NCBI RefSeq assembly: GCF_001194135.2
Contig: NC_069000.1
Span: 10,909,774 to 10,973,773, forward strand
From: Octopus bimaculoides
Lineage: Eukaryota
Length of the DNA: 64,000 nt
Direction of reading: 5' to 3'
Shown piece after piece: positions 2,068-64,000 of this stretch. The first letter of the stretch is position 1. The number at the start of each line of letters is the position of its first letter. The position numbers and the translations under genes are program-made. The notes below the pieces were generated by a model. That model ran no database searches and was not told the origin of the DNA. It worked only from the letters and a program-made list of their open reading frames with translations.

Positions 2068-2191
2068 AAAGCAGCATGTCTGTGTGTTTGTATGTACACA
2101 CCTCAACGATGAAGTGATGTACTTCTCTACATTTGCTTGTGTTAAACGTTTATAGTAATTTTTCGCATTTTTTTCCCCTTCTTCCTTACAG

Positions 2192-5082: not shown

Positions 5083-5398
5083 TTATTCTTTTACTTGTTT
5101 CAGTCATTTGACTGTGGCCGTGCTGGAGCACCGCCTTTAGTTGAATCAAATCGACCCCAGGATTTATTCTTTGTAAGCCTAGTGCTTATTCTATCGGTCT
5201 CTTTTGCCGAACCACCAAGTTACGGGGACCTAAACACACCAGCATCGGTTGTCAAGCGATGTTGGAGGGGACAAACAAATACACAACATATACACACGCA
5301 TGCATACATACATATATACAACGGGCTTCTTTCAGTTTCCGTCTACCAAATCCACTCCCAAGGCTTTGGTCAGCCCGAGGTTATAGTAGAAGACACTT
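5083..5398 (-). mobile_element. family A SINE, head truncated
   Basis: same tail and body as 3745-4068. Confidence 0.85.
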
Positions 5399-16850: not shown

Positions 16851-16903
16851 TTATGGCAACAGCTCAGTAAGATCTGTTGCGATAGGGAGTTCACGGCGCT
16901 GAC
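16851..16903 (-). CDS. candidate terminal exon 4 of a small secreted protein (G-QRRELPIATDLTELLP*)
   Basis: minus-strand acceptor ttttgtgtttttacttcatcacgacaatag; phase-1 entry matches exon 3; CpG-containing; ends TAA. Confidence 0.3.
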
Positions 16904-17174
16904 CTATTGTCGTGATGAAGTAAAAACACAAAACAGATTAAGCACCCACCTTAGCCATCGTCTAACCAAAAGTCAGTTCACCATCTTCTTATTAATATGA
17001 ATATCAAAAGGACAACTGTGAACTAATTCTTGTATAACTTATTTACTTCACGTTAATGTTTGCCATTAACAGAATTTCGATTACTGTGGAGTCTAGTCTT
17101 CTCTCTACTATATGTTTTCCAGCTGTGCCTTAATAATCATAAAAGCTAGTTAGTTATTAGTTCGACAGACAAAC

Positions 17175-18109: not shown

Positions 18110-18228
18110 AACCAACATCAAATGAGGTGTCCTACTTCAAGGATACAGTATGCTGCTCAGTCCAGGGATCGAACCTGGAACCTTATGATCATGAGTCTGA
18201 CACTCTAACCACTAAACCACAAGCCTCT
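18110..18228 (-). mobile_element. family D SINE head
   Basis: reverse complement reads tggtttagtggttagagtgtcagactcatgatcataaggttccaggttcgatccctgg. Confidence 0.7.
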
Positions 18229-20125: not shown

Positions 20126-20755
20126 CAGACTGATAAATACCACCATCCCTTTTTAACACTCAAATCCAGAACCCGTATATTTTAATTATCTGACTTTTTG
20201 GTTTTGTTTGAAGTGGGGTTTGGGTTTTTTCTCATCCAGAACCCTTCAGCCTTGTTTGCAAATCATGAGATTGTATATTTTCTTTCTGGGATTGTATCTT
20301 TTCTATTGATATCTCCACAGACTTTTAGAACCCATCTCATCTTTGATTAGATCAAACTACTGCGCCTGTTTGTCCATTGCATCTGTCTCCAACCTTAACT
20401 TTACTCCCCGTTCCATTACTTTTTACTTAAACAAGACACCCAACTTTCTAGGATGTCAGAACTGGCACAGAGGGACAAGGAACGCTTTGCTAGTTTTTTG
20501 CTTTACTTCTTCTTTCCAACTTCAAATTCAACCAGGATTGATTTGGGCCATTCAGCAATCCTGAGGAGATCTATAACATGAATAAAATATATAATGCTTG
20601 CAAAACAATTCGAGCGAATCAGCTGCAATCTCACTTTCTTGCACTTGAACTTACAAAGCCAAAATAGAGCATCAGAATGATGTAGATGCCTCTGATAAGA
20701 ACCTATGTAAGTTTCCAAAAATTGATCAAGGTTGTTTGTTGGTTTTTCTTTTATA

Positions 20756-20920
20756 GGCATAGGAGTGGATGTGTGGTAAGTAGCTTGCTTACCAACCACA
20801 TGGTTCCGGGTTCAGTCCCACTGTGTGGCACCTTAGGCAAGTGTCTTCTATTATAGCCTCGGGCCGACCAAAGCCTTGTGAGTGGATTTGGTAGATGGAA
20901 ACTGAAAGAAGCCCGTCGTA

Positions 20921-20960
<40 letters not shown>
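20756..20960 (+). mobile_element. family A SINE 5' half ending in (ta)n
   Basis: ggcataggagtggatgtgtggtaagtagcttgcttaccaaccacatggttccgggttcagtccc. Confidence 0.85.
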
Positions 20961-23900: not shown

Positions 23901-24212
23901 GTATGTATAATAAATATATCCGCTCCACTTTTAAGGAAAATTCCAGCCGAAGTTAAGTCGTAATTATTACTGGCGGCATAGTCTGGAACTATGATATATA
24001 TATATATATATATANNNNNNNNNNNNNNNNNNNNNNNNNNNNNNNNNNNNNNNNNNNNNNNNNNNNNNNNNNNNNNNNNNNNNNNNNNNNNNNNNNNNNN
24101 NNNNNNNNNNNNNNNNNNNNNNNNNNNNNNNNNNNNNNNNNNNNNNNNNNNNNNNNNNNNNNNNNNNNNNNNNNNNNNNNNNNNNNNNNNNNNNNNNNNN
24201 NNNNNNNNNNNN

Positions 24213-27276: not shown

Positions 27277-27680
27277 AAGGCGGTGAGCTGGCAGAATCGT
27301 TAGCAGGCTGAACTAAATGCTCAGCAGTATTTCGTCCGTCCTTACGTTCCGAGTTCAAATTCCGCCGAGGTCGACTTTGTCTTTCATTCTTTCGGGGGTC
27401 AATAAGATAAGTACCAGTTGAGCACTGGGTTATTATTATTGTTGTTGTTGTTAAGGCAGCAAGCTGGCTGAATCGTTTGCACGCCGGGCGACATATTTTT
27501 TTGGTATTTCTTCTGTTGTTACGTTCTGAGTTCAAATTCCGCCAAGGTCGACTTTGCCTTTTATCCTTTCGGGGTCGATAAATTAAGCACCAGTCAAATA
27601 CTGGTTCGATGTGATCGACTTACCCTTCTCCCAAAATTTCAGGCCTTGTGCCTTTAGTAGAAAGGATTATTATTATTAAT
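27277..27680 (+). mobile_element. two tandem family B SINEs
   Basis: aaggcggtgagctggcagaatcgttagc... and aaggcagcaagctggctgaatcgtttgc..., each with ttcaaattccgcc..ggtcgactttg. Confidence 0.85.
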
Positions 27681-31130: not shown

Positions 31131-31766
31131 TGAGGTGGCAGTACCCCACTACAGGGTACTGAAACAAGGAAAAGAGTTGGGGTCTTTTTGTTTGTTTCTT
31201 TGGCTGTGGGGTAAGTCTCGGTGGTTGAATCGTTGAACGTCATTGGATTCGTTCGATCTATCTGTCGAAATCTTAACTCCCATCGTCAGCCAGTTAGCTC
31301 TTTATAACTAATTTGAATGCCTGGTTCCTCGTTTTTACCAAATTCAAACGAGTCCAACAGGAACGAAATGCTCACCTGAATTTATTATGGATAACAATTT
31401 AGAAATAATAGCATGAATGGTGTTTTGTTTTGTTTTTTTACTTTCTGCTGTTAGTTACGAAAGTTATTAGTTTAATCGATTTTCGAACTCTCAAACAAAG
31501 GATGAATAGAACATCTGCAATTGTTGTTGTCGTCCTTGTTGCTTTCAATGCAAAATTTTTCTGTAGTAATCATGGTTTTCTTGGTTATAATTTAATTACT
31601 ATGGTCGTCATGCAATTTATTTTAGTTTTTAATTATTGTTGGAAAAAAATTTTTTTTAATGTTATTTGCTGCTTGTTTTACGAGTCACTTGATCTAAGGT
31701 CGTATGAGGAAGCCTGAAGCAATTACACTGTCCATTTAAAACTCACACATGGCTGTGTTATATATA

Positions 31767-31802
<36 letters not shown>

Positions 31803-31842
31803 TGTATACGCGATGTTGTATGTATGAAATTAACAACACTGG

Positions 31843-32030
31843 TAAGGCGGCGTGCTGGCAGAATCGTTAACACGCCGGGCGAAATGCTTAGCGGTATTTC
31901 GTCTGTCGTTACGTTCTGAGTTCAAATTCCGCCGAGGTCGACTTGACCTTTTATTCTTTCGGGGTCGATCTAATCGACTGCCTCCTCCCCAAAAAAATTC
32001 AGGCTTTGTGCCTATAGTAGAAAAGGATTA
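31843..32030 (+). mobile_element. family B SINE, CpGs largely intact
   Basis: aaggcggcgtgctggcagaatcgttaacacgccgggcgaaatgcttagcggtatttcgtctgtcgttacgttctgagttcaaattccgccgaggtcgac. Confidence 0.85.
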
Positions 32031-32104
32031 ACAACACTAGTGCATTGAACAGAAATACCTTATATATTTCCAGTTATTTCCTTTAAGCTGAGAGGGCGGC
32101 TTAC

Positions 32105-32154
32105 CTTTTCGTCCCTTGCGAGATCGACAAAATAAATAGCAGCTGAAGTATCAT
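32105..32154 (-). CDS. candidate first coding exon, signal-peptide-like (MILQLLFILSISQGTK-R)
   Basis: ATG at 32154, hydrophobic core, strong donor AAG|GTAAGC at 32104, phase 2; upstream sequence lies in a gap. Confidence 0.4.
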
Positions 32155-33141
32155 TGTTCCGNNNNNNNNNNNNNNNNNNNNNNNNNNNNNNNNNNNNNNN
32201 NNNNNNNNNNNNNNNNNNNNNNNNNNNNNNNNNNNNNNNNNNNNNNNNNNNNNNNNNNNNNNNNNNNNNNNNNNNNNNNNNNNNNNNNNNNNNNNNNNNN
32301 NNNNNNNNNNNNNNNNNNNNNNNNNNNNNNNNNNNNNNNNNNNNNNNNNNNNNNNNNNNNNNNNNNNNNNNNNNNNNNNNNNNNNNNNNNNNNNNNNNNN
32401 NNNNNNNNNNNNNNNNNNNNNNNNNNNNNNNNNNNNNNNNNNNNNNNNNNNNNNNNNNNNNNNNNNNNNNNNNNNNNNNNNNNNNNNNNNNNNNNNNNNN
32501 NNNNNNNNNNNNNNNNNNNNNNNNNNNNNNNNNNNNNNNNNNNNNNNNNNNNNNNNNNNNNNNNNNNNNNNNNNNNNNNNNNNNNNNNNNNNNNNNNNNN
32601 NNNNNNNNNNNNNNNNNNNNNNNNNNNNNNNNNNNNNNNNNNNNNNNNNNNNNNNNNNNNNNNNNNNNNNNNNNNNNNNNNNNNNNNNNNNNNNNNNNNN
32701 NNNNNNNNNNNNNNNNNNNNNNNNNNNNNNNNNNNNNNNNNNNNNNNNNNNNNNNNNNNNNNNNNNNNNNNNNNNNNNNNNNNNNNNNNNNNNNNNNNNN
32801 NNNNNNNNNNNNNNNNNNNNNNNNNNNNNNNNNNNNNNNNNNNNNNNNNNNNNNNNNNNNNNNNNNNNNNNNNNNNNNNNNNNNNNNNNNNNNNNNNNNN
32901 NNNNNNNNNNNNNNNNNNNNNNNNNNNNNNNNNNNNNNNNNNNNNNNNNNNNNNNNNNNNNNNNNNNNNNNNNNNNNNNNNNNNNNNNNNNNNNNNNNNN
33001 NNNNNNNNNNNNNNNNNNNNNNNNNNNNNNNNNNNNNNNNNNNNNNNNNNNNNNNNNNNNNNNNNNNNNNNNNNNNNNNNNNNNNNNNNNNNNNNNNNNN
33101 NNNNNNNNNGGGGGGGGGGGTTGAGAGTGTCGGAAGTAAGT
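32155..33141. promoter_or_regulatory. inferred bidirectional promoter, mostly within the N gap
   Basis: minus donor GTAAGC at 32104 and plus donor GTAAGT at 33136 point away from each other; G-run and ETS-like cggaagt at the gap edge; CpG-rich surroundings. Confidence 0.35.
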
Positions 33142-34844
33142 AAGGAACGAAAACGGACATGATGTATTTGAATTTACTACGTCATTGTACATCATGTAGT
33201 AGATAATACTGAAGGTGGTTACATGTGGTGTGAGGGTGGTACTTCGCCACTCGGAGTGTTGGACGTCGCGTTCTCTTATATGATATTATCGCTGCACGAT
33301 TACATGGAAGAAAATTCGACAAAAACCACCACCTTCTCTTCTACACAACAGCTTAATCACGTCAGACTGGCACTGTGCCAGTACGATAATGTTTCTACTA
33401 CTCATTCTGCCAAATTATTCAGAACGTTTCTCCAATGTCATAAATTAAGGCTTTCATTTTAGCTCATAACACATTCTTCAAGCCTGAACCTCTCTGAAAA
33501 TTTATGACTGATATCGGAGTACTTTTGAAAGCAAGAGATCTTTTATCTGTAACGACACAGGAAGGATGTTATGAATTAATTCACATAATCGGAAAAAGAT
33601 TACCAGTGTTGTAATAAAAATGGTTTTTTTAAAAAATTACACGGCAACAATGCCGTAAAATGTTTTGGCTGAACATTTTCCCCCCTTAATATGAATGTCT
33701 TGGGGGTAATTTTTTTTTTATAAGCTAATAGAGGGACTGTGTTCACAACCGTTACATACCTTCCCATTAAAAAAAAAGAAAGAACTACGCAATAACAATT
33801 CTGTTAAACGTTTTGAGTAAACCTTTTTTTTTTTTAATCTGAACCTTTTTGGGAGTCTTTTGTTTTTTATAAGTTAATCGAGAAGCTGTGCTCTGTTCAT
33901 TGCACGCCTTACTANNNNNNNNNNNNNNNNNNNNNNNNNNNNNNNNNNNNNNNNNNNNNNNNNNNNNNNNNNNNNNNNNNNNNNNNNNNNNNNNNNNNNN
34001 NNNNNNNNNNNNNNNNNNNNNNNNNNNNNNNNNNNNNNNNNNNNNNNNNNNNNNNNNNNNNNNNNNNNNNNNNNNNNNNNNNNNNNNNNNNNNNNNNNNN
34101 NNNNNNNNNNNNNNNNNNNNNNNNNNNNNNNNNNNNNNNNNNNNNNNNNNNNNNNNNNNNNNNNNNNNNNNNNNNNNNNNNNNNNNNNNNNNNNNNNNNN
34201 NNNNNNNNNNNNNNNNNNNNNNNNNNNNNNNNNNNNNNNNNNNNNNNNNNNNNNNNNNNNNNNNNNNNNNNNNNNNNNNNNNNNNNNNNNNNNNNNNNNN
34301 NNNNNNNNNNNNNNNNNNNNNNNNNNNNNNNNNNNNNNNNNNNNNNNNNNNNNNNNNNNNNNNNNNNNTTAAGTCTCTAGTTTCACTAAATTTTAATTAA
34401 TTTTTTCAGCCATACTTTTTGTTTTCTTTTTAAAGTTTTTGACACCAGAGTAATCCAGTTAAGGTTTTCAAAACGGCCATATTATATTTTGACGAATAAT
34501 AATTATATTGTTTTATAAATTATTTTATCTTTTAAACACAAAACTACGCTAAGAAAATAGATTAATAAAACACAGCGAGGAAGCATTTTTTATTGTTCGA
34601 TTCTTACGACCTCAATAGCGGACACTTACACTTTTAATTCACTGAATCTAGGTCACGGGTATACAGTTCTAAAAGAAAATAGAGGCTGGACTTTGTCTGC
34701 ATGTGAGAGAAGTATTGATCTACTAATCGTGTAGATTATTTTGGTAATCGAAGTTTTTCGATTGATTCTTACTTATGCGAAACACCCGCTGTATGAGTAT
34801 TTTGTGTACATGGCTCCCTTCTGAGGTACTTTTCTTAAGACCAT

Positions 34845-35310: not shown

Positions 35311-38300
35311 GTTTCTCGATATTACAGCTCCCTTTGTTGTTTCTTTCCATTGGTGAAGTTTAGTTTTTCCCCAGGTGAGATTGAATATTGCATCGCACCG
35401 CACATTATCCTTTATCCCTCTTGCGCGTGAACATGTTTTCAGATGCAGCAAAAATTNNNNNNNNNNGATTGAATATTGCATCGCACCGCACATTATCCTT
35501 TATCCCTCTTGCGCGTGAACATGTTTTCAGATGCAGCAAAAATTGAAATCTTCCCCCATCACTGTCCTAAATAGCCCATGCAAATATATATTTTCCATTT
35601 TAAGCAGCTATTTTAGACAGGTTTGTTTTCAATTCTTTTCTTTATTTCCTTTTTTTTTTTTTTTTCAAGTTTTCTTATAAGTTAGCAAACTTCTTTTAAG
35701 TAATTTAGTTTTGGTTTGTTTGTTTGTTATTTTAGCAATTTTAGTTATTGGATTGCTACAATCCTAGAGCGTCGCCTTCGCGGGGCAATCAATCGATTTG
35801 TATCGACTAAATTATTCCTATTATAATGTCTATTTTGTCGCTTTCTGTATATCGAATGGCAGGTGGTTTAGCTTCTCCAACGGACATACAATTTGGCGGA
35901 CAAGATACCGCAAGAAGTGCTTGTTGTTATTTAAACACATATTTGTGTATGTTCATCTTATAAGTGATTGATACGTCGCGTTTTTATTACTTAGTAAAAT
36001 ATTGCCCTATTTGTCTTACTCGGTTTTTATTTATGATGTATAAAAACCATACCATCAAAAAGCACCTTTGCGTTCCTTTTGTATTCCAGCGCCGGGACAC
36101 TTGACAAATTGTTAATTAATTCTCTGAGTGCAATTTTACTGTGACCTAAAAATAAAAGCAGAGAACAAATTCTATGTCAGTAACTCTGTGTGGTTAATTA
36201 ATTAGCTATTTGCTTGTTGGGAGATTAAGTAGGGAGAATGTGGCCCTTTTTTACCAAGCCTCAGAACGCTTTTGATCCTATTCGTTTTGGTTTTCAATAT
36301 TCGCTCCTTTTTTTTTTCCTCTTCCTGTGGCTTTGTTTAATTTTTTCTTTCTTTTTTTTTATTGCAACTTTGCGAATAAAAAAAAAATTAATAGTTTTTA
36401 ATTGTGTTGCGAAAAACATGTTCAATCATTCCAGTAGTGTACAATATGGTTTTGTGGTGTTGTTTTAGACCTAGTGATCGAACAAGCATTTGATCAGAAA
36501 AGACATAACAGTCGGAGATCCGACTGTTATTTCTAACAACTCGAACGGTCACTTCGAAGTACCTTTGTAGGCGCTGTTCGCTGACATTTTTGGGGGTGGG
36601 GGTGGAGTGTAAACATAAAAATTATTTTTAAATTCATCAAAAAAGCCCCCTTGTGGACAGTGTGGCCTGTGGCAACTTCCTATGAGGTTATTGTGGCCTG
36701 GTGTCGCTAAAGTTTATTGTCCAGCTATCACCACAGTCGATTGAGTGAGTAAGTACTTCGTCACTTCAAGCTTGTCTGTGTGTGAAGCCCTAAAAAAAAA
36801 ACGAAAACATTCTGAAATTTTGTATTCGTAGTTTATATAAATAGGAGGAAATTTCCAGTTGTTCTTACCGTATTTTCTGCTTTCTCAGCATCAAAAAAAT
36901 AAAGGTTTATTTACATTCTTTTCATATTTTTCTTTCTTTTGTTATATTAACTAAGAAAAAAAAAAGCGAGTCAACTGAAATAAGACTGCAATGATACTTT
37001 ATATAAAAGATATGTTTATAGAAAAATATCAATGAGGCAAAATAAAATTGAATTATTATTTATTCTTTTTAAAAATAACAATCATCGTTGTGAAGTGTTT
37101 CAGTTTATTCGCCCTTTTTTTTTTTCCGTGGTTTTGGCAATTGAATTTTTAAAACTACGTATAAACTCGAGGGGGTAAAAAAGCCTTTTGCTCTTATTCA
37201 AACTGAGGAGTTAATTATAATTTTCGATTTATTTTATTTTCGCGTATTGATTCGTAGTCATTAATGTTTGGTCGGTGAAATTTTTAAAAAACTACATTGT
37301 GCTAACGACGAACATTGGGATTTAATTTGTGATCCAAAATTGTATTTTTTTTTTATTAACAACTTTGTAACCAAAATGTTGCCTCTCCAGTTGATTTAAT
37401 TATGCCATTGTTGTTAATCACTTAGCTTTAATTCTAAGCGTTCGTATCCGATCTGACATAATTTATAATTTATTACGTGTACAGAAGTTAGTTGTTAAAA
37501 TCTCTAATTGCATCACACACACACACTTATGCAGAAATGCTCATGGATGGCCACAAATGGGTAGAGACTAGCAGAAATTGATCTCGGTATCTCCCGTTAG
37601 AAATATTTGTCTGGTCAACCGCTTCACAGATAATGTACACGCGCGCGGATTTGCAGATTAAACAAAATATTTGTGAATCTTGATGCCCTTATCAAAACAT
37701 TGATTTACAATTTCCACAGTTTCAGTTTGCCAACCTCGGTCGAACTGACCTGTGGTCGTAGGTGTTCAGTCCACTACTGTTATGACATTGTCCTGTCACC
37801 TGTTTTTAGGACTGCGTAATTTCCAAATCACACAGCCAGTATCTGTTGGAGTTTTGAGCGATCGCGCGCACACAGTCCCTCTTCGAATCGTCTCAAATGA
37901 TACATATATTGTGTGTGTTAGTGTATGGTCCCGGTGTAGCGATTTTAGATTAACCCATTTCGCCTCGTAATTTAGATAGGCATTCAATTTATCTGTAAAT
38001 AGAATGGGATCGATATGAAATTACCTCTGGGTAGTTGGAAGGTCATTTCATTCCTGCCGCATAAGAAGAACAAGTAGTAGTTTGTGAAATCAGGTTCAGA
38101 CTGACTGAGGGCGATATAGAATTGATTTCAAATTATCAGTGGAGTAACTTGGGACGGGGGGCGGGGGATTAGCTTGAAGCTTTGGTAGATCTAGGTGTAT
38201 ATTATCGGACCTGCCCTTTCATTTTTAAGACAGTAAGGTAGTATTTGAAAGAGATTTTGACTGCTCTTTCAAAAATCATCCTACTCTTGTGATTGAACGG

Positions 38301-40239: not shown

Positions 40240-40457
40240 ATCATCATCGTCGTTTAACGTCCGCTTTCCATGCTAGCATGGGTTGGACGATTTGACTGAG
40301 GTCTGGTGGGCCAGGAGGCGACACCAGGCTCCAATCTGATTTGGTAGAGTTTCTACAGCTGGATGCCCTTCCTAACGCCAACCACTCCGAGAGTGTAGTG
40401 GGTGCTTTTACGTGCCACCGGCATGAGGGCCAGTCAGGCAGGTACTGGCAACGGCGT
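40240..40457 (-). mobile_element. family C RTE tail
   Basis: catcatcgtcgtttaacgtccgctttccatgctagc...gccagtcaggcaggtactggcaacgg. Confidence 0.85.
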
Positions 40458-43812: not shown

Positions 43813-43875
43813 CATATATATTTATATATATATGTATTCACCTGGAAATAGATATATACAAATGAAAGTCTAAAA

Positions 43876-44290
43876 TCATCATCATCATCGTTTAACGTCC
43901 GCTTTCCATGCTAGCATGGGTTGGACGATTTGACTGAGGACTGGTGAAACCGGATGGCAACACCAGGCTCCAGTCTGATTTGGCAGAGTTTCTACAGCTG
44001 GATGCCCTTCCTAACGCCAACCACTCAGAGTGTAGTGGGTGCTTTTACGTGTCACCCGCACGAAAACGGCCACGCTCGAAATGGTGTCTTTTATGTGCCA
44101 CCCGCACAAGCCAGTCCAGGGGCACTGGCAACGATCTCGCTCGAAAATCCTACGGGAGCCAGTCAGGCGGTACTGGCAACGGCCACGCTCAAAATGGTGC
44201 ATCTCATGTGCCACCCGCACAAGAACCAGTCCAGGGGCACTGGCAACGATCTTACTTGGCTTGCCGGGTCTTCTCACGCACAGCACATCT
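43876..44290 (-). mobile_element. 5'-truncated RTE LINE: last ORF2 codons plus 3'UTR with internal duplication
   Basis: minus strand begins gctgtgcgtgagaagacccggcaagccaagtaa (AVREKTRQAK*) and ends ...ggacgttaaacgatgatgatg. Confidence 0.75.
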
Positions 44291-47644: not shown

Positions 47645-47880
47645 GTGTGGAAGTGCGTGGCCTAGTTGTTACGGTGTTGTGCTCACAATCACTAGATCTT
47701 GCGTTCAATTCCTGCACCAAGTGAACCGTTGTGTTGTGTTCTTGAGCAAATCACTTCAACATCTGACATGTAGCAGCACACTTGTGCACCTGTTCAGGTA
47801 ATGTTGATTTGATGGAGGGAGGGAGTTAATGAACAGTCCATACATTTGATTACTATAAACAAATCATTTGTGCAAGTTGT
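47645..47880 (+). mobile_element. family D SINE
   Basis: ggaagtgcgtggcctagttgttacggtgttg...gcgttcaattcctgcacc...gtgttcttgagcaaatcacttc. Confidence 0.7.
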
Positions 47881-47914
47881 TGAGCAAAACCTGACCACTC
47901 ATACATCAATTTCA

Positions 47915-48148
47915 ATAGGGAGAGCCTTGTGAGTGGATTTGGTAGATGGAAACTGAAAGAAGCCCGTCGTATATATATGTGTATGTTTGTTCCCCCACAA
48001 TCGCTTAACAACTGATGCTGGTGTCCCTGTAAGTTAGTGGATCGGCAAAAGAGACCGATAGAATAAGTCCTGGGGTCGATTTGCTCGACTAAAGGCGGTG
48101 CTCCAGCATGGCCACAGTCAAATGACTGAAACAAGTAAAAGAGTAAGA
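47915..48148 (+). mobile_element. family A SINE 3' part
   Basis: agccttgtgagtggatttggtagatggaaactgaaagaagcccgtcg...gactgaaacaagtaaaagagtaagagta. Confidence 0.85.
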
Positions 48149-48422
48149 GTATACTGGGGTCGATTTATTCGCCTAAAAATTTAAGGTGATACCCCAGCAT
48201 GCCTGCAGCCTAGATGAAAGATAATCACACAAACAACCTTTTATACAGAGCAGAAAATCCTTTTAGAAAAGAGCTTGAAATAAGCAATTACTTTCATACA
48301 TTATAACTAATTCTCTTTTAACAAATACTATTGATGTTTTCTTTAAACAATTTCTTTGTTGATATTCTTCGAAATATTTTNNNNNNNNNNTTTTTTTTTT
48401 TTTTTTTTTTCTTCTTTTGCAG

Positions 48423-48609
48423 ATTTCAAATAGAAAAGATCTGCTGATGTTGGATATCAGTGAAACATCTGCAATTGCTTCTGTCACCATATTCTGGATT
48501 ATGTTTCCTTCAAGAAGCTCCTTTTCCCATTCAATGGAATCTGGAATTTTACAAATGTTTATGGACTTCTCTGAGCTGTAATCTGAAAAAAAAAAAAGCC
48601 TTTCACCAT
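48423..48609 (+). other. candidate non-coding 5'UTR exon of the AFF gene
   Basis: very strong acceptor (t)n-cttcttttgcag ending 48422; donor CAT|GTAAGT at 48610; candidate acceptors at 48971 (tag) and 48984 (cag) just before the ATG. Confidence 0.45.
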
Positions 48610-48991
48610 GTAAGTCATTTAGGTGATAGTAGCATCACCAGTGCCGGATTCTGGGTCCTTTCACAATGTTTTGTGGAACACACGACCAGTCACCAAGTTT
48701 TTTTATCTGATTATTTTCCATTGTTTAACGAACATTCCCCTCCCCCCCCCACACACACATACATACATGCATGCATGCACACACATGTTCACAATACACT
48801 GACCTATTCTCAGATCGAGTTTACAATCCTATAACTACACATATAAATTGTTGTTTGTATCTATGCACACTCTTGAAAACAGAAAAGAATAACACAAGCA
48901 AAATCCATACACATCAGTCACAGAATTGTTTTGTTCATTCTGGAAACTACCGTAATATTGGTACGCCGTAGTTATCACCATCAGCTGAACC

Positions 48992-51900
48992 ATGATCAGT
49001 TATAACAAAGAAATATTGAAAGAAGAAGCTAAGAAAGCCAGGCAGGCCCAAGTTATGCAGGCGATCCAGTCACGAACCACATCGACTCCTAAATCCAACT
49101 CAATGCTGTTCAGCGAGCCTGTACGTGTTTCTTCCAACCCTAAAAACCATTCTGTCATGCACCAGACTATCAACAAAGTCCTTGGAAACTACGACGAGGT
49201 CGTCGAAGAAATGTCCAAGCAACCAGGTCACATGATCGGCATTGACAAGCAGACCCGCTCGACAAGAGAAACCAACCACCAAGCCAAAACTTCGAAATTG
49301 CGATGTAATGGCTACAAAATGCGTCCGCAGGCTAGTTCCAAGGGGATGATAGGGAAAGATGATACTCCTCGGAGTCAAGATGCATCTAGTCATGGGCGTT
49401 GCAGCGGAAGCAATAGTGGCAGCGGTGGCTGCAGTGGTAATAGTTCTGCTTCCTACCTTGGTCATGGCCATGGGCACCAAGATGGTTCTAGACAAGGACT
49501 CCTTGAAACACCTCCAGATGGTGCTTATAGTCGTAATTCTCAGAACTCTCATTCAATGTCGAAAGACAGTGGTCACGGACAAAACTCGATAGACAATAAC
49601 TATCGAAGCCGGACTTCTCAAAATTCTCGATTGTCTACTTCATCAAGAATGTTGTCCGAGAAGCATGGACCTGACAAGGACTTCCATCCTAAAAAACACT
49701 CATATTCTTCACAAAATTCTTTCATCAACCCCAATAACAAACTATACACTTCGTCCTCCTCCTCCTCATCATCCACACAACTCAGTAAGCACCCCCCTTA
49801 TCCAACTACCAACTCTGGCAATGCACACGTGAAACCCAATCGGCCCCTATCTTCTTTAAGTGACAAAAGCTCATCACATGGCAGTAATAGTGAGAAATAT
49901 TATCGTGACAAGTACCATTCTGGGGGTGAGAAATCTTTGCAAGTGGACAAGTTTCATAGTAGTGCTGACAAGACCCATGCTGACCATAAACAGTATAGTG
50001 ATAAGACACACAATGAAAGCAAAGAACTTTCTAGTAATGTTGATACCAGTGAGAAAAGCCTCTCCAATAACAGTGGTAGGGAGAAGTCATATTCTGCTGA
50101 GAAAGGAATTTCACATCATTTGACCAAAACCAAGTCAAGATCCCCAATGCCCTCTCTAACACCCAGTGTACAGTCTCAACAACAGGGTCCCCCATTATTA
50201 CAGTCTCAACAACAACAGCCTCACCTTCAACTACAACAGCCATCAAAGGGACCAGCAGCACCACCTTCTGCTATTGCTTCCACACCTCCCCCTCCTTCTC
50301 TCAATATGGATGGTTCTCGAGAGAATCATCACACCTCGTTGCCCTCATCATTGTCACCTGCATACATTGCAACGAATACCGTTTCAAGCAAGCCATCCAT
50401 GCCGACACATCTGAACAAAGGCTTATCAAACTCTCTAAAAGTCAAAATTATTGGCTCAAATCCGGCAAAGCTCTCCAGTGATCTTGATGACAGCGAATCA
50501 AATAACCAGCACACACAGATTGAGAAAATTATGAAAGAAATGTGTCAGCCAGAGAAAATAACGGGTATAAAAACACCGAGCGTGAAAGAGAACCTGGATG
50601 AAGAGAACAGCTTCCTTTCACCGTTGGGGCAAAGCCATAAACACCTGCTGTCCGAATTAAAACATCAGAAACCTTTAACACCTGTACATCAAACAAAGTT
50701 AAAAGCTATTTCACCATCTTTAACTCTCCACCGTTACCAAAAGCAGAATTTAAACACATCACCAGTGCTGTCTGATCTCAAAGAAGAGAAAAATGACCTG
50801 GATAAAATTTTAGCCGAGATGACCTGTCCCGAGTCTCCAGTTACAGCCATTTCTACACCGGAGAAAATGTCAGAAAATCCATTTGCTCGGTCTTTCAAGA
50901 ATTCCCATTCACCTTCCCAAAAGACTTTTGGACTCTCTGACAGTGACAGTGATTCCTTTGATAATGAAGAGGATGCAACACAACCCCCTAATGATAAACC
51001 AGTCCACAGTTGTTCATCTGATGAGAACACCAATAACCAAGCAGATGCCAGCATCCTCAAAGAATCTAAAAACATGACCCTGGCTGCTGCAGAAATTAAG
51101 AACCATCAAAACACAGATTCTGTAGGCGAGAACCAACCATTAAAGACAAGTCCACTTGAATCAACTTCTCCAACAGCTATGCCTGTCTTCCCCTTAAATG
51201 CTGTGAAACGTTCCTTACAGAGTCAAGAAGATCTTTCCCAAGACCTTCAGATGAGTGATTCAGACAGCGAAGCACTCGAGTCTACCAAAGAATTCCCCCC
51301 CGTGTTTACTCTCTCAAAGTCATCACCGTCCAGTCCTATCTCACGCCTACATCATTCCATGGATATCGGTGCAGTGGAAACCAGAAAGGAGTCAGTAGGC
51401 TTTGATATTTTCAGTGAACATCCAACAAGTGAAAGTGATTCTGAGAGTGATGATGTTGTAGGTAAAACAAAGTCCAGTACGTTGACTGTCAACAACTCAG
51501 CTGTTGCAGAATCTAATACTGTCTGTAATAATACGCCATTAGTTTACTCAACACCAGCTAGGAAAGGATCGGGCCAGTTTGCTAAGAAAAATGATAATGA
51601 TGCTGATGATGAAGAGGAGGAGGATGGAGATGACGATGAAGATGATGATCAAAGTGATGTCGAAGAAAGCAATGAGCTGGATAGAATAGGCCCAGCGGTC
51701 AAGCATCAGAAACCAGATGTGGTCTCTTCAAGTTCAACTAGCGACTCAGAAACTGATGATGATGAGTCGAACGTCTCAGAAAAAGCATCTAGTGCATCAG
51801 ATGACGACGATGATAACGACGAAGAGGAAGAAGACGAAGATAAAGACGATCATTCAAAGCAGCTCAACTCAGTGGACGGGGTCAATGATGCGGAACAGTG

Positions 51901-54751
51901 CGATTCTGCAAGTGTTCAAAAGACACCACGCTGGTGTCTGCGAGCATTCTTTTCTTTGCCAAACAGTGGCAACAAAGCAAATCAGGTCCCCAAAGAAGCC
52001 GAGGAAATTGTATCCGTCTCTAGCCATACTGGAAGCAACGTCAGTGCAAGCCAAAGAAGCAGAAACAACAGCAGCAGCAGCAGTAGTAGTAATAGTGGTA
52101 GTAGTAGTAGTAGCAGTAGCGGTAGCAGCAGCTGCAATGAGAACAGCAGTCCAATCACTGAAGCGAACAGTCATTGCGAATCTGATGATGACAGCAACAG
52201 TGAAAAGTCATCTGCAGAGGAGAAAATCTCAATAATACCAAGTGATAATGAAGACCCAGCTAGCAGCTGCCATAAACAAGATGTTACCAGTGCCCCACCA
52301 TTTACTGAGGACATCTCATCAAAGGAAAACAGTTTGCTGGCCAATACTAAATCTGTGACAAATCTCTTGACGTGGCCACCTGGCAAAGACATCCAAGAGT
52401 TTCCATCTCCTGTATCTTCCCCGATGTCTGCATCACCTACATTAGTTCATAGAAAACTGAAACGTAAAATTTCACTTCCCATTTGTATTAATACCAATTT
52501 GCTGTCCTCCATTCCAAATGTTAAACGCCGCAAACTCTCAAATGAACCGTCCCAGCCCGCCGAGCACCTGGATACCATCAAATCTGAAACAGTCCTGAAC
52601 ACTTGGTCAAATCAAATGCAATCCCAAGAGTCTGTTGAGAAACAGTCTGAAAACAAGCAACCCTGGATAAAGCGAGACAAAAGTCCAAGACGAACACCAA
52701 ATAATACTGAATCTAATTGTTGCCAAAAACGCTCTTTGACCATCAAAATCAATACAGATCTTCTGCATTTCATCCCTGCAAAATGCTTAAAAGACATGCC
52801 ATTATTACAAGATGTTAAAACAGAAAACTGTATCGAGGAAGCTGTGGTCAAGCCTGAAATGCAGAATGGTAATATTTCTCCTTCGGTTAAAGTAAGTGAA
52901 CCCAATGCAAACACCGAAAGTTTTGTCATGACACAGACTACAACGACACCTGTGCTGACGGAGAGTACACCTTGCAAAGTAGAAAAATCTGATTTTAAAT
53001 TCCGGATCCCAAAGAGAAACCTCGACTCTGAGAGCTATGACATCAGTCGACCCAGTCCAAAAATGATCAAAACCGAGGGACAAATTTCAAAGAATGAAGA
53101 TAACCAGTTGCCAAATATTTCCAAGAGTGAATCTGTGAAAAGTTTGTCTTTGGTCAACAGTGACAATAACCACAGTTCTCCTTCAACTGAGTCTTCAACT
53201 GCTACCAGCAAAACCAGAATTTCTGATAAAGATAAACAGATTTCTTCCATAGATGATACCAAACAACCATGCCATGACAAAGAGAAGGACAATGCTGTGC
53301 TACCTGCATCTCCATCTGAATGTAATAGCAGTGGTTGTAGTACAAGTAGTAGCAGTAGTAATAGCAATAACAACAACAACAACAATGGTGATGATGACAT
53401 CGACGACGATGGTGATGACAGCAACAGTGATAGTGAGCATGATGACAGTGATCACAATGACCATGTTGATAATGAAAATGTTAAGAAGCATAACAACAGC
53501 AATGGTAATAATCAAAGTGTCAATGCTTTAACTAACTCGTCCAGCAATAAAAAGCTTAAAACAGCAACCCAGGCAAACTTGACATCAAAAAGCTCATCGG
53601 ATAATTCCAAAGACACCGGGAAACCGGTTGCAACACCGTCTCCATCAAGGCAGTCTAACTCTTCTTCTGCCTTGTTGTCACCGAAGGGGTCGACGTCAAG
53701 CAATGCAGCTGACCACCACCACCACCATCAGCAGCAGCCCTCGACGTCTGCTATTAGTATGATCCCAGTCACCCCCAGCTACAGCAACAGTTCAAATAGC
53801 CTACGTAACAGGCCATTATACAAGAGTAGTAGTTCTAACCACCACAGCAGCAGTGATGGTGGCTGCAGCCATAAGGGTAAAGAAAAGGCTGCTGACCACT
53901 TTTTCCAAGAAGCCAAACGTATGAAACACGAAGGAAACAAATTAACCGACATCTTTGAGAAATCTTTCTTGTATATGAATGCTGTGGTGTCCTATGTACA
54001 GTGCGGTATAGCATTAGAAAAAGATCAGGAACAGCGATGTTTTCGCATGTTTGGTGAGATTTTTGACTTTCTCAATCAAATCGGACACTACCACCAGTAC
54101 CCTCACGAACCGCAAATCTCACTGTTGCGTTTGCTGTTGATGTCTCGTGTTTGCAAAAAGCTCTACGACATGAAGAAAAAGGTTGCCGACAACCTCAAGC
54201 TGGCCATTGATGAATACAACAAGCAGTCTAGTAGCACTTCCTTGCCATCTCACACCCCATCCCCGCATCGGCCTAACTGGAACACTTCCACGCCTTCATC
54301 ACGATCAACCCCTTCACCATCAGGCAGCATTGACTCAATACGTTCACAAGGAAGTAATGCTTCAGATGCAAGACTAACGCCTTCAGCTTCATCGTCAAAT
54401 GCTGTTTCAGCAACATCACACTCCTCCTCCCATATCTCTAACAACTCTACTTCATCCTCTTCTTCCTCCAACCCAAACTCTTCGAGCCTTACGGGTTCGT
54501 CTTTGCCCTCCTCGTCACAGACTGTTACTATTCCTAAAAGAATTCATTCCATCACACAGAACTACATAGAAATATTAGATTATATTGTGAAGACTCACAA
54601 TTACTGGGAACAGGCTGAAAATCAGAAAGAAAGTTGCAAAGACTTTATTGATCTCCTGCACACTAGATGTAATTACATCTCATTGCAAAGCAGTATTTTT
54701 CAATATGTGGAATACGTAAGAGTTGGTCTCCAAATTCTCCGAGAATCATGA
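48992..54751 (+). CDS. lilli: AF4/FMR2 family (AFF1-4/lilliputian-like) super elongation complex scaffold, 1919 aa, intronless CDS
   Basis: N-terminal LFSEPVRV...INKVLGNYDEV (cf. AFF LFAEPYKV...IQSMLGNYDEM, cyclin T1-binding); ILAEMT..PVTAISTP (ELL-binding region); DLQMSDSDSE; WCLRAFF; LTIKINTDLLHFIP (AF9/ENL-binding); C-terminal homology domain ADHFFQEAKRMKH...CGIALE...VTIPKRIH...YVRVGLQILRE. Vertebrate paralogue cannot be assigned. Confidence 0.93.
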   Translation: MISYNKEILKEEAKKARQAQVMQAIQSRTTSTPKSNSMLFSEPVRVSSNPKNHSVMHQTINKVLGNYDEVVEEMSKQPGHMIGIDKQTRSTRETNHQAKTSKLRCNGYKMRPQASSKGMIGKDDTPRSQDASSHGRCSGSNSGSGGCSGNSSASYLGHGHGHQDGSRQGLLETPPDGAYSRNSQNSHSMSKDSGHGQNSIDNNYRSRTSQNSRLSTSSRMLSEKHGPDKDFHPKKHSYSSQNSFINPNNKLYTSSSSSSSSTQLSKHPPYPTTNSGNAHVKPNRPLSSLSDKSSSHGSNSEKYYRDKYHSGGEKSLQVDKFHSSADKTHADHKQYSDKTHNESKELSSNVDTSEKSLSNNSGREKSYSAEKGISHHLTKTKSRSPMPSLTPSVQSQQQGPPLLQSQQQQPHLQLQQPSKGPAAPPSAIASTPPPPSLNMDGSRENHHTSLPSSLSPAYIATNTVSSKPSMPTHLNKGLSNSLKVKIIGSNPAKLSSDLDDSESNNQHTQIEKIMKEMCQPEKITGIKTPSVKENLDEENSFLSPLGQSHKHLLSELKHQKPLTPVHQTKLKAISPSLTLHRYQKQNLNTSPVLSDLKEEKNDLDKILAEMTCPESPVTAISTPEKMSENPFARSFKNSHSPSQKTFGLSDSDSDSFDNEEDATQPPNDKPVHSCSSDENTNNQADASILKESKNMTLAAAEIKNHQNTDSVGENQPLKTSPLESTSPTAMPVFPLNAVKRSLQSQEDLSQDLQMSDSDSEALESTKEFPPVFTLSKSSPSSPISRLHHSMDIGAVETRKESVGFDIFSEHPTSESDSESDDVVGKTKSSTLTVNNSAVAESNTVCNNTPLVYSTPARKGSGQFAKKNDNDADDEEEEDGDDDEDDDQSDVEESNELDRIGPAVKHQKPDVVSSSSTSDSETDDDESNVSEKASSASDDDDDNDEEEEDEDKDDHSKQLNSVDGVNDAEQCDSASVQKTPRWCLRAFFSLPNSGNKANQVPKEAEEIVSVSSHTGSNVSASQRSRNNSSSSSSSNSGSSSSSSSGSSSCNENSSPITEANSHCESDDDSNSEKSSAEEKISIIPSDNEDPASSCHKQDVTSAPPFTEDISSKENSLLANTKSVTNLLTWPPGKDIQEFPSPVSSPMSASPTLVHRKLKRKISLPICINTNLLSSIPNVKRRKLSNEPSQPAEHLDTIKSETVLNTWSNQMQSQESVEKQSENKQPWIKRDKSPRRTPNNTESNCCQKRSLTIKINTDLLHFIPAKCLKDMPLLQDVKTENCIEEAVVKPEMQNGNISPSVKVSEPNANTESFVMTQTTTTPVLTESTPCKVEKSDFKFRIPKRNLDSESYDISRPSPKMIKTEGQISKNEDNQLPNISKSESVKSLSLVNSDNNHSSPSTESSTATSKTRISDKDKQISSIDDTKQPCHDKEKDNAVLPASPSECNSSGCSTSSSSSNSNNNNNNNGDDDIDDDGDDSNSDSEHDDSDHNDHVDNENVKKHNNSNGNNQSVNALTNSSSNKKLKTATQANLTSKSSSDNSKDTGKPVATPSPSRQSNSSSALLSPKGSTSSNAADHHHHHQQQPSTSAISMIPVTPSYSNSSNSLRNRPLYKSSSSNHHSSSDGGCSHKGKEKAADHFFQEAKRMKHEGNKLTDIFEKSFLYMNAVVSYVQCGIALEKDQEQRCFRMFGEIFDFLNQIGHYHQYPHEPQISLLRLLLMSRVCKKLYDMKKKVADNLKLAIDEYNKQSSSTSLPSHTPSPHRPNWNTSTPSSRSTPSPSGSIDSIRSQGSNASDARLTPSASSSNAVSATSHSSSHISNNSTSSSSSSNPNSSSLTGSSLPSSSQTVTIPKRIHSITQNYIEILDYIVKTHNYWEQAENQKESCKDFIDLLHTRCNYISLQSSIFQYVEYVRVGLQILRES

Positions 54752-56426
54752 CCTGACCTTCTGAACAATTACAAAGAGAAAATTTAAAATAAAAGAAAAA
54801 AAAAATAAACAAAGAAACAAAACTATTGCTATTTATAATAAAGGAAAAAAAATAATGTTTACTTTTCCTTCCCTTCCCCCATTTGGATTTTTTTTTTTGA
54901 TTTTTTTTTTTCCTCCTCCTCCTTGATGCTTGATCTTCAAAGGAAGCCATTTGCCAAAATAGAAAGTGTCTGAGATCCAGGTAGCTCCCTCAAGAGCCAA
55001 CCTGTCTATAAGTATTGATGAAAAGACGACGAGAAGAAAAGAGAGGGATGGAAGGTGAGAAGAAGAGCGAGAAAGACTTTATATGTGCAAGAATGAGAGA
55101 GAAACACTGTGTGTGTGTGTGAAAGAGATGGTTTGTGCAGAAAGTATATACTTAAAGTCAGTCCTTTGTAAGATAATGAAGATGAAGTGATGGCATTAAA
55201 AAAAAAAAAAATAAAGTCAAAACATAAAATTGTGTTTGTCTTTTGATCTTCCCTCCCCATTCTACCCAAATATGCCTGCACACACGCTCACACTTACACA
55301 AACACATACATGCTCTCACGTGCACACACATTCTTGTTATAAGTTTTTAATTCAAATAATTTTTGAATATAAAAAGTGCTTTGAAAACTTTATTAAACAT
55401 AGTTTAATTTTTCCATGAATTTTACACGTGGTTTTGTACACACAGCTAGCCGAGTTCATTTGAGTGCAATAAGGTCGACAGGTAAATCATCAGTGGCGGT
55501 ACACTGAGTCCCTTATAAAAGCACTGAATCCCTTTATGGCTCAGTCTGTCTAGCTGTATCCAAAGTACCATCGGGAGTTGCAGTTCACTGCTCTATGCAG
55601 CACGAGCACTCTATATAAAGAATGAGGGTTTCATTCATGCAATACTGAGCTCAAATCCTCCCTTGGGGCCCCACAGAAGGCAACAGAAAAGCAACTACAG
55701 TGTTTCCTCTCTTGATTCGCCACATGAGGTTTTTCAAGTGGTGACCCAATGAGTTTTGAAATATTTACTTGTACTTTACATATGTGTGAAGACAAGATGT
55801 CGTTTCTGTATGTCTGTGATTTTGTACATGCACACATAAATAAATACACAAGTCTAGCTAAATTTCGTGTGTGGAAGAACATATTTGTGAAAATCAATCG
55901 TATTAAGCTTTGTAATGTGAGCCAATACATTGTTCCTACCATTATCACCTTTCCAGTTCTGTCAACACACACACACACACACATACACTGCTTTCTCCTC
56001 CCTCCAGTTTTGTACTGTAGGTGAGACTTGCAGAGCGAAACCAACCTGAGGCCTGGTTCCATCATTGTGTCTTGTGTCTGTCGCTGTTTTAGGTTGTGAA
56101 GACTTCCTTGTTTGAAATCAGGACTGATTGATTCTTTTGGTTCTTTTTTTTTTTTTTCCTAAACACCCAAGGGACAGCATTTGATAGCCTAAGTTCTTTT
56201 ACTGGAGAAGAGATCGAAAGAGCAAAGGGAGAGAAGGCAATATATAAACTAGGTGTGATGTACCGTTACTTTTAATGACTGTGAGATGGATGGCTGGGTC
56301 TAGTAGAGATAGACAGACAGAAGCAAAAAAACAATCACATTTGCTTCTTTTATTCGGATTATATTCTTACAAAACAAAAGACAATTTTTAATTGCTACAT
56401 TAAATCACATATTTATAACTTGTAGC

Positions 56427-56949: not shown

Positions 56950-57330
56950 TTTTTTTCTTGTGTCAGTCAGACTGCGGCCATGCTGGGGCACTGCCTTGAA
57001 GAAAATTTAGATGAATGAATTGACCTCAGAACATTTTTTTTTTTCAGCCTGATACTTATTCTATTGGTCTTTTTTGTTGAACCACTAAGTTACAGAGATA
57101 TCAACATACCAATATCGGTTGCCAAGCAGTGTTGCAGGACAAAGACACACACATATATACATACACACACAATGAGCTTGCTTCAGTTTGCATCTACCAT
57201 ATCCACTCACAAGGTTTGGTCAGCCCAAGGCTATAATAGAAGACACTTACCTAGGGTGCCACACTGGGACTGAACCTGGAACCATGTGGTTGGGAAGCAA
57301 ACTTTTAACCACTCAGCTACACCAGCACCC
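56950..57330 (-). mobile_element. family A SINE, near full length
   Basis: gactgcggccatgctggggcactgcc...gggactgaacctggaaccatgtggttgggaagc. Confidence 0.8.
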
Positions 57331-57589
57331 ATATGTATGTTTTTGCATTTTGTAACGGGAACCGTATCAAGTCCTGCCATTTCAATCAAAAAGCACAATC
57401 AGAACATGCCCAGCTAAAGAAATTTCCCTGTCATTCATTCTAACTCCATGCGCCATACCTATCTCTGTGTGGTCGTACATTAGCAAGATCTAAAGAACCA
57501 ATAGCTGCATGATAAACAACATTTTTTTTGTCATCCCATTCAGGGGTCAGTATAATTTGTTTTTTTTGCTGTCTAATCTCTTTCTGTTG

Positions 57590-60084: not shown

Positions 60085-60908
60085 GATATCGTAGCCATGG
60101 CCGATGCCAGTGTCATGTACTGGCACCTATATTAATGGCACGTAATAAGCACCCTTTGAACTCCGGGCCTCACGGAGGCAGTGACAGGTGACTGAGATTT
60201 TTGGCAATATACCATGCTCAAAGGCGGTGAGCTGGCAGAAACGTTAGCATGCTGGGTGAAACGCTTAGCGGTATTTCGTCTGCCGTTACGTTCTGAGTTC
60301 AAGTTCCGCCGAGGTCGACTTTGCCTTTCATCCTTTTGGGGTCGATAAATTAAATACCAGTTATGCACAGGGGTCGATGTAATTGACTTAATTCCTTTGT
60401 CTGTCCTTGTTTGTCCCCTCTATGTTTAGCCCCTTGTGGGCAATAAAGAAATAAGAAATGTTAGCAGTATTACATCTGTCTTTATGTTCTGAGTTCAAAT
60501 TCCACTGAGGTCAACTTTGCCTTTCATCCTTTTGGGGTCGATAAATTAAATACCAGTTGCATAATCGACTGGCTCCTTCCCCCAAAATTTCAGGCCCTGT
60601 GAATCAGACTCCTGGTCATTGCCAGGACCATGTTTATGACACCCACGAATCGTTGTCATGGTCATTGCTGTTACCATGTAAATGGTACCCGTGAATCATA
60701 GTTGTGGTCATTGCCAGTGCTATGTAAATGGGACCCATGCTAGTGATACATAAAAGCACCTGTTACACTGTTGGAGTTTTTGGCATTAGGAAGGGCATCC
60801 AGCCATAGAAACCATGCCAACTCAGACTGGAGCCCTCCAGATTACCAGTTTCAGTCAAACCGTCTAACCCATGGCAACATGGAAAACAAGCGTTTGATGA
60901 TGATGATG
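60085..60908 (+). mobile_element. cluster: RTE 3'UTR fragment, two tandem family B SINEs (60221-60600), RTE tail
   Basis: gccgatgccagtgtcatgtactggcacc; aaggcggtgagctggcagaaacgttagc; ggcattaggaagggcatccagcc...tgatgatgatg. Confidence 0.75.
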
Positions 60909-63109: not shown

Positions 63110-63792
63110 TATCATCATCATCATCATTTTTATGGCCACTTGTCATTGCTTGGATGGGTTGGACAGCTCGTTTCCAACACAGCATTTCACCATTTATTGC
63201 AATCTTTTGCATGAATTTCAATATTTTAAGACCAGCTTTTGCCACTACTACCCATACATTCCTTGGTCTTCCTCTTCAGCAGTTTCCTTCCACTCAAAAG
63301 TCCTGGCTCTTCTTTAACCATCTGTTGTTATCCTCCATATACACCAAAAGTCTGCACCAACATAATCTTCATTCTTGCACACTGCAAATGATTCTTCTTA
63401 CACCTAGTCTATCTCCCAGCTCATCTGTACCACATGGTTCATGCAGGCTAACATATTACATGTCCTGTGAAGCATGCTGACTTCATTTCTCTCTAACCTT
63501 TGCACATCCTTTGCATTCAGTGCCTGCATCTCACTACCATGCAACATTGCACTTCATACACATGCAACAAAAATATAACCTCACATGGAGGGAGAACCCC
63601 GTTGTTACCAACAGAGATTATAAGCTCTCTGAACATTTTCCCCCCTGTCCTTATCAGAGCTGCCATACTTTCTGAGCGCCTTCCTCTGCTGCTGATAAGG
63701 TCACCCAGGTAACAGAATCTATCAACTACTTCTACAGAGTGTTTCAAGCATTGGAAAGTTATTTTAGCAGCAATCTGACTGCTAACTATATC
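63110..63792 (-). mobile_element. RTE-clade LINE 3' fragment (ORF2 C-terminal part plus tail), decayed
   Basis: EVVDRFCYLGDLISSRGRRSESMAALIRTG..FREL, then by frameshift CMVVRCRH (cf. MLHGSETW); (cat)n tail at 63110. Confidence 0.85.
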
Positions 63793-64000
63793 TACTCTTT
63801 TACTTGTTTCAGTCATTTGACAGTGGCCATGCTGGAGCACCGCCTTTAGTCGAGCAGATCGGCCCCAGGACTTATTCTTTAGAAGCCTAGTACTTATTCT
63901 ATCGGTCTCTTTTGCCAAACTGCTAAGTTACGGGGACGTTAACACACCAGCATCGGTTGTCAAGCGATGTTGGACACACACACACACACACACACACACA
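63793..64000 (-). mobile_element. family A SINE 3' part, continues past the window end
   Basis: tactcttttacttgtttcagtcatttgacagtggccatgctggagcaccgcctttagtcgagc. Confidence 0.9.

Follow-up and report, generated by a model that had tools for sequence, protein, structure and literature searches.

A single-exon AFF/lilli coding sequence in Octopus bimaculoides and the possible routes to its loss of introns

Introduction

How did the coding sequence of a gene that is normally very long and divided into many exons come to lie in one exon? The question is raised by the AFF/lilliputian (AFF/lilli) gene of Octopus bimaculoides, which is encoded in a 64-kb stretch of chromosome CM046620.1 (assembly GCA_001194135.2). 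This stretch, at its full length, is the window analyzed here, and positions are counted from its first nucleotide. AFF/lilli is an essential regulator of transcription elongation, and human AFF genes have about 20 exons. An initial annotation of the window had described the octopus gene as intronless and as the probable product of retroposition, either replacing its parent or serving as a divergent paralog, followed by long purifying selection. Our search of the literature found nothing on the structure of invertebrate AFF genes or on octopus retrogenes.

Here we find that the window gene is a working octopus copy of AFF/lilli without introns in its coding sequence (CDS). The single-exon CDS is derived, and an intron in the 5' untranslated region (UTR) probably precedes it. 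The reading we favor for its origin, at a probability of only about 0.4, is cDNA-mediated loss of the CDS introns at the original locus.

Results

The AFF/lilli CDS is complete and occupies one exon (48992..54751, + strand; 1919 aa), as given by the open reading frame (ORF) call, the GenBank gene range and the O. vulgaris ortholog. From its ATG start the frame stays open for 1919 codons, uninterrupted as the initial annotation had stated. An in-frame TGA at 48986-48988, one codon 5' of the ATG, makes any upstream extension of the ORF impossible. The GenBank gene range for the protein is exactly 5760 nt and therefore holds a single CDS exon, and a scan of the window for N runs placed no assembly gap within it. 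Similarly, the recorded range of the O. vulgaris ortholog (P0002; 1912 aa, 92% identical) is 5739 nt, implying a single CDS exon in that species too. P0002 carries the UniRef name 'AF4/FMR2 family member lilli', and the octopus gene is an already annotated ortholog of the known AFF/lilli family.

The two octopus loci align by BLAST as one collinear block (48393-55654, 92.7% identity), flanked by unique DNA at about 82-88% identity and by many short interspersed repeats; the flanks are likewise collinear with O. vulgaris. Within the CDS identity rises to 94.7% (96.7%, 97.7% and 89.7% at codon positions 1, 2 and 3, respectively), with third positions diverging about three to four times as much as the first and second. 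In a codon alignment of the two species the synonymous (dS) and nonsynonymous (dN) divergences were 0.177 and 0.026. The resulting dN/dS of 0.147 is far from 1, and in every 200-codon window the ratio stays below 0.33. These values indicate that the AFF gene is functional and under purifying selection, in agreement with the long constraint proposed initially.

The ORF encodes a complete AFF/lilli protein with its modules in family order. The C-terminal homology domain (CHD; aa 1630-1919; 53879..54748, +) contains no introns and a Ser-rich insert of about 100 aa. Pfam AFF4_CHD (PF18876) matches these C-terminal 290 residues at E = 7e-35 (121 bits against a cut-off of 24), as do the AFF4 CHD chains 6KN5, 6K7P and 6R80 in the PDB (E about 1e-22 to 5e-22), and pairwise BLAST gave high-scoring segment pairs in the CHD with all relatives tested. 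At the other end of the protein, aa 39-68 (LFSEPVRV...LGNYDE; 49106..49195, +) form a predicted docking segment for P-TEFb (cyclin T1). When the N-terminal 113 residues were compared with the PDB, AFF4 peptides co-crystallized with P-TEFb came out on top (4IMY, 4OGR, 4OR5, 5L1Z and 6CYT). Their E-value of 0.016 is marginal, but the LFxEP...LGNYDE core is kept in octopus; a pattern search found the LFxEPxxV...LGNYDE motif in fish AFF2 as well. Pairwise BLAST also gave collinear N-terminal segment pairs with the AFFs of Solemya, Patella and Lineus (E = 8e-7 to 4e-5).

Between the two ends lie motifs resembling the docking sites for ELL and for AF9/ENL. ELLBow-like motifs (..IL.EMT....P.TAI.TP), whose human counterpart is defined in PMC5290273, were searched for by regular expression. 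Copy 1 (aa 511-530, IEKIMKEMCQPEKITGIKTP; 50522..50581, +) is a pattern match that O. vulgaris and the cephalopod-like P0005 also keep. Copy 2 (aa 604-625, LDKILAEMTCPESPVTAISTPE; 50801..50866, +) is more canonical and, besides matching the pattern, aligns by BLAST with Argopecten AFF (E = 0.002); the ELLBow region aligns with that of Patella (E = 8e-4). Two AF9/ENL-binding-like motifs were found by pattern only, copy 1 at aa 1162-1175 (LPICINTNLLSSIP; 52475..52516, +) and copy 2 at aa 1249-1262 (LTIKINTDLLHFIP; 52736..52777, +). The corresponding motif occurs singly, by pattern, in fish AFF2, Tubulanus and Haliotis, and the octopus block of aa 1152-1265 aligns with P0005 (E = 2e-12). Fragments carrying the ELLBow-like motifs gave no meaningful PDB sequence match and those carrying the AF9/ENL-binding-like motifs gave none, the motifs being too short.

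Two Pfam families expected of an AFF protein remained silent. AF4_int (PF18875) matched neither the full protein nor isolated fragments, and AF-4 (PF05110), which is present in fish AFF2, matched neither the full protein at E <= 1 nor the N-terminal fragment at E <= 10. The missing AF-4 match reflects divergence and low complexity and does not outweigh the motif-level matches. Given this silence, the initial claim that the ORF carries every AFF hallmark needed separate tests; it holds for the N-terminus, the ELLBow-like motifs and the CHD, extends to the AF9/ENL-like motifs by pattern only, and fails for the two Pfam families.

Judging from motif conservation, cyclin T1/P-TEFb would be the partner of the LFxEP...LGNYDE segment and ELL that of the ELLBow-like motifs; the hydrophobic I/L-x-I-x-L..LL..IP motifs would dock on the AF9/ENL AHD, and the CHD would serve for dimerization. 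The octopus AFF is thus predicted to be a flexible scaffold of the super elongation complex (SEC). Its module order (P-TEFb segment, ELLBow-like motifs, AF9/ENL-binding-like motifs, CHD) is the same as in vertebrate AFF1-4, especially AFF4, whereas at 1919 aa the octopus protein far exceeds these in length and contains extended low-complexity tracts rich in Ser, Asn and Asp. Collinear homology in the N-terminal segment, ELLBow and CHD is also found with other invertebrate AFF/lilli proteins (Drosophila lilliputian and those of Argopecten, Patella, Haliotis, Lottia, Solemya, Lineus and Tubulanus). AFF orthologs in molluscs include XP_069130959.1 of Argopecten, XP_050416187.1 of Patella, XP_046363130.2 of Haliotis and XP_064608627.1 of Liolophura.

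Both the ELLBow-like and the AF9/ENL-binding-like motifs are doubled in octopus and in the full-length relative P0005, in contrast to the one of each in vertebrate AFF1-4. With the same patterns, the AFFs of fish, hemichordate, nemertean, gastropods and bivalves showed one of each motif or none. The doubled partner-docking motifs may be specific to cephalopods.

The large exon likely begins well 5' of the ATG. A polypyrimidine tract followed by CAG at 48400..48422 (+; tttttttttttcttcttttgcag) has the form of the 3' splice acceptor of a 5'-UTR intron. Almost nothing aligns between the two octopuses 5' of ...ttcttcttttgcag, while from 48423 to the ATG base-level identity is 97.2%; such a jump in conservation at 48422|48423 is typical of an exon that starts at a canonical 3' splice site. 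The O. vulgaris annotation contains an upstream spliced model on the same strand, whose last exon ends at position 9586 of that locus (about window position 48581) and which continues upstream for more than 9 kb, to beyond the edge of the locus. Most simply, this model consists of misread 5'-UTR exons. The exon with the ORF is therefore probably the terminal one, at least 6.4 kb long and preceded by at least one 5'-UTR intron, and the octopus AFF gene is probably not intronless. In light of the acceptor, the conservation step and the spliced O. vulgaris model, the initial description of an intronless gene was too strong. Alternatively, 48423 to about 48581 may belong to a different, small gene as its final exon, with the AFF promoter in the remaining 400 nt. 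A 10-N gap (48381-48390) lies directly 5' of the pyrimidine tract of the acceptor. An acceptor at 48997-48999 (atgatcag|tt), which would join an upstream coding exon, was rejected as no polypyrimidine tract precedes the site; it is further ruled out by the 97% conservation of the 570 nt upstream and by the related P0005, which also starts MI...

The 5' leader of the large exon (48423..48991, +; 570 nt), a putative 5'-UTR delimited by conservation, is more similar to that of O. vulgaris than is the CDS as a whole, and the CDS in turn more so than its third codon positions (97.2%, 94.7% and 89.7%, respectively). The leader contains 12 upstream ATGs (uATGs), matches no Rfam family and shows no excess of folding stability (z = +0.83). 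Downstream of the stop codon, the probable 3'-UTR and end of the collinear block (54752..55654, +) are 93.7% identical to O. vulgaris and carry AATAAA/ATTAAA polyadenylation signals at 54788, 54804, 54837, 55195, 55210 and 55392. A segment of 136 nt past the probable 3'-UTR (55519-55654) is single-copy in O. bimaculoides and present as four tandem copies in O. vulgaris (16560-16961 of locus L001).

Whether the single-exon CDS is ancestral or derived was judged from the gene structures of relatives. Among molluscs the comparison of genomic loci covered O. vulgaris; for the other molluscs, introns were read from isoform differences, on the logic that internal differences between the RefSeq isoforms of one genome can arise only at splice junctions. 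Word-index protein searches were dominated by Ser/Pro-rich low-complexity words and returned insects and fragments, not molluscs. In a psyllid, six exons with GT-AG borders encode the CHD (333 aa), and in a cricket a CHD-only model of 275 aa is spread over 16.7 kb. The five psyllid junctions map to octopus aa about 1634, 1694, 1712, 1745 and 1883, at all of which the octopus sequence is uninterrupted. Those at aa ~1745 and ~1883 are also found in the cricket, and an isoform junction in the amphioxus CHD falls within about 2 residues of the one at aa 1694. Outside the CHD, amphioxus isoforms differ at residues 2-7, 506 and 1028-1042. Patella and Tubulanus isoforms differ at the N-terminal spot seen in amphioxus, and Haliotis and Tubulanus isoforms differ 50-100 residues before the CHD. 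The fish AFF2 gene, in contrast to the one-exon CDS of octopus, spans 140 kb, which implies CDS introns. The expectation that AFF relatives are multi-exonic with a split CHD is thus confirmed in psyllid and cricket, and the span of fish AFF2 is consistent with it.

Octopus therefore shows neither the CDS isoform junctions of other invertebrate AFF/lilli genes nor the multi-exon CHD of insects. Since at least an N-terminal intron and one CHD intron are shared across bilaterian superphyla, and since lophotrochozoan relatives have CDS introns, the single-exon CDS of octopus is derived. The collinear O. vulgaris ortholog shares this single exon, but the CDS introns of the outgroups argue against its being the ancestral state. 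The introns were lost before O. bimaculoides and O. vulgaris split, possibly on the long cephalopod stem branch.

Three further cephalopod-like sequences (P0004, P0005 and P0006) bear on that branch. Their CHDs are 62-64% identical to the octopus CHD, while the two Octopus CHDs are 95% identical to each other, and the topology implied by CHD identities is (Octopus,(P0006,(P0004,P0005))). The value of 62-64% would fit an octopod-decapod divergence extrapolated from the Octopus-Octopus value, and the three are best read as orthologs from other cephalopods. Cephalopod CHDs are only 30-36% identical to those of bivalves, limpet and nemerteans, which are 47-53% identical among themselves, so AFF evolved markedly faster on the cephalopod stem. 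In the P0004 contig the CHD is uninterrupted, the sequencing run from which it comes being either DNA or RNA; three runs yield P0005 contigs of about 6.1-6.3 kb, which are transcript-like. P0006 (JGI, 690 aa) is a 'mini-AFF' that keeps the N-terminal segment, the second ELLBow, an FxFRIPKR block and the CHD but in which roughly 1100 residues are missing, both AF9/ENL-binding motifs among them. Possible explanations are a splice isoform, a compact decapodiform paralog or a faulty gene model. Two other sequences, P0166 and P0167, were rejected as lophotrochozoan genomic contigs because BLAST groups them with arthropod-like sequences.

Around the gene, repeats resembling short interspersed nuclear elements (SINEs) make up 15-25% of most flanking 4-kb bins by self-match. 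The initial picture of a retroposon-saturated region holds to the extent that such repeats are common in the flanks, but they amount to only 14% of the window and 0% of the exon block. At least four SINE-like families of about 150-350 nt are common to the window and the O. vulgaris locus, and none interrupts the AFF exon. Examples identified by self-match and comparison with O. vulgaris lie at 3747-4067, 5080-5398, 14411-14699, 20752-20931, 27277-27622, 40240-40436, 43875-44066, 56951-57341, 60221-60561 and 63790-64000. A weak tRNA-like Rfam match at 18154-18224 (-; 31.2 bits, gathering score 29), not called by ARAGORN, is probably the head of a tRNA-derived SINE or a tRNA pseudogene. In the stretches 348-1261, 2032-3045 and 32060-33195, which lie in bins rich in N runs, several frames are open, on both strands; rather than genes, these are most likely assembly gaps and tandem repeats of a simple kind. 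The CpG observed/expected ratio reaches 1.2-1.75 at about 21250-24000, 31500-32250 and 36750-37500, against a window median of 0.54. The first of these regions lies in the least repetitive upstream bin and may be an unmethylated promoter or a first exon, perhaps that of the AFF transcript.

Discussion

Among the routes by which the octopus CDS could have lost its introns, we favor cDNA-mediated loss at the original locus, with a probability near 0.4. It is preferred by a small margin over replacement by a retrogene, and the two mechanisms are inseparable on present data. Under the favored scenario, the CDS introns of the bilaterian ancestor would have been removed by a reverse-transcriptase-mediated process, with cDNA recombining at the original locus in a single round or repeatedly, each time with a 3' bias. 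Recombination of this kind would characteristically leave only the 5'-most intron. As octopus probably retains only its 5'-most intron, the gene would have the structure expected as the endpoint of 3'-biased, reverse-transcriptase-driven loss. Nor would the in-place route depend on a full-length retrocopy (about 6.5-7 kb), on the gain of a promoter or on the disappearance of a parent gene.

Several points weigh against in-place loss. No positive demonstration of it was found, and the 5'-UTR intron on which it leans is predicted from sequence and from the annotation of another species. The evidence for introns in molluscs is indirect, coming from isoform differences only. Because AFF genes are long, losing all introns through cDNA recombination would mean deleting at least tens of kb. 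The ATG of the Patella, amphioxus and Argopecten genes, moreover, lies in alternative 5' exons, possibly first exons; if so, the upstream intron of octopus would be new, as in a retrocopy that has captured a foreign 5' exon. Finally, the long, fast CHD branch of the cephalopods is a pattern often seen in relocated genes.

These last points lead to the strongest rival, which is possible if tentative. Here, a processed AFF mRNA would have been retrocopied to a new locus, where it captured a promoter and a 5' exon by means of a new or cryptic acceptor, and the multi-exon parent would then have been lost, leaving an 'orphan retrogene'. Consistent with such a replacement, all CDS introns are gone together while outgroups keep them, the single upstream intron is of a kind that retrogenes often acquire, and the cephalopod stem is both long and accelerated and shows motif doubling. 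AFF introns are also very long, and the repeat-rich flanks point to past retroelement activity in the lineage. Retrogene replacement has documented precedents such as amphioxus SYCP1 (PMC5803294), which likewise has a single-exon CDS in one lineage, multi-exonic orthologs and an undetectable parent. The relocation of SYCP1, however, was shown by synteny, whereas in octopus there is probably a 5'-UTR intron, scars of retrocopying are absent and in-place loss is equally open. Coleoid genomes, moreover, have undergone heavy rearrangement.

Replacement would require a full-length retrocopy of at least 6.3 kb, the right regulation of an essential gene and the loss of the parent. The locus bears few of the expected traces. 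Between 47800-48995 and 54752-56300 no non-microsatellite k-mer of at least 11 nt is shared that could represent a target-site duplication. Short A runs follow the stop codon (A10 at 54796, A8 at 54845 and A14 at 55198-55211), none of them tied to a demonstrable copy boundary. Both scans agree with the initial observation that no poly(A) remnant or target-site duplication is recognizable. The lack of a target-site duplication is expected if the event is old, in which case absent scars are not decisive. Elsewhere in the window there are no relic AFF exons that could be a parental remnant, and outside the AFF ORF no stop-free stretch exceeds about 175 aa. None of the ten best ORF fragments of the window matches a reverse-transcriptase or endonuclease Pfam domain (0/10), so the active RTE machinery that had been proposed nearby finds no support in them. 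Of the retroposition origin initially put forward, what stands is a derived single-exon CDS; against it are the missing scars, parent and nearby reverse transcriptase, and the probable 5'-UTR intron. A more far-reaching version, in which a retrocopy replaced the multi-exon AFF on the cephalopod stem and then underwent fast evolution, motif doubling and the acquisition of an ultra-conserved, uATG-rich leader, with the SEC scaffold rebuilt as a result, appears unlikely.

Quite improbable, in turn, is a stepwise history, in which the introns were lost independently by deletion or in several small events over cephalopod evolution, or in which the molluscan ancestor already had few CDS introns. Large central exons do occur in the family, as in a psyllid model directly 5' of the CHD, in which 855 aa are encoded in about 2.6 kb, and for gastropods and nemerteans just two junctions each are demonstrable. 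The psyllid CHD, however, has at least five introns, and the positions common with cricket and amphioxus imply many ancestral introns. The precise independent deletion of each of them would be less parsimonious than an RNA-mediated event.

The odds are longer still that the ORF is a divergent retro-paralog whose intron-containing parent survives elsewhere in the octopus genome. The existence of P0004, P0005 and P0006, the last of them a 'mini-AFF', could be read in its favor. However, the 90% cluster of P0005 contains only members from SRA assemblies (Logan) and no NCBI octopus protein, and the CHD tree would fit an octopod-decapod divergence. The window gene, moreover, bears all the motifs and is strongly constrained. 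Neither a 90%-cluster search nor an exhaustive HMMER search of 1.84 billion representatives recovered a second AFF gene from any annotated octopus proteome, and scans of metagenome contigs with a cephalopod CHD alignment and with P0006 gave nothing that tblastn confirmed. Like other invertebrates, octopuses apparently have one AFF gene per genome in their annotated protein sets. With a sole AFF gene recovered there, and with collinear flanks in the two species, the initial option of a divergent paralog finds no support. That the ORF is a non-functional retrocopy or an artefact of annotation or assembly, for which nothing speaks beyond the odd single-exon structure, is effectively refuted by the intact 5.76-kb frame in a second species, the dN/dS of 0.147, the excess of third-position changes and the gap-free exon.

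Given the above, the present finding would be of modest specialist interest unless relocation of the gene is demonstrated. It poses a question of mechanism, retrogene replacement or cDNA recombination in place, between two processes that are both already known. Nevertheless, the collapse of a 5.8-kb CDS into one exon provides a clean natural case for studying wholesale intron loss in intron-rich animals. Together, the doubled motifs and the conserved 5' leader suggest that the way in which the SEC scaffold is built and its mRNA translated has changed specifically in cephalopods.

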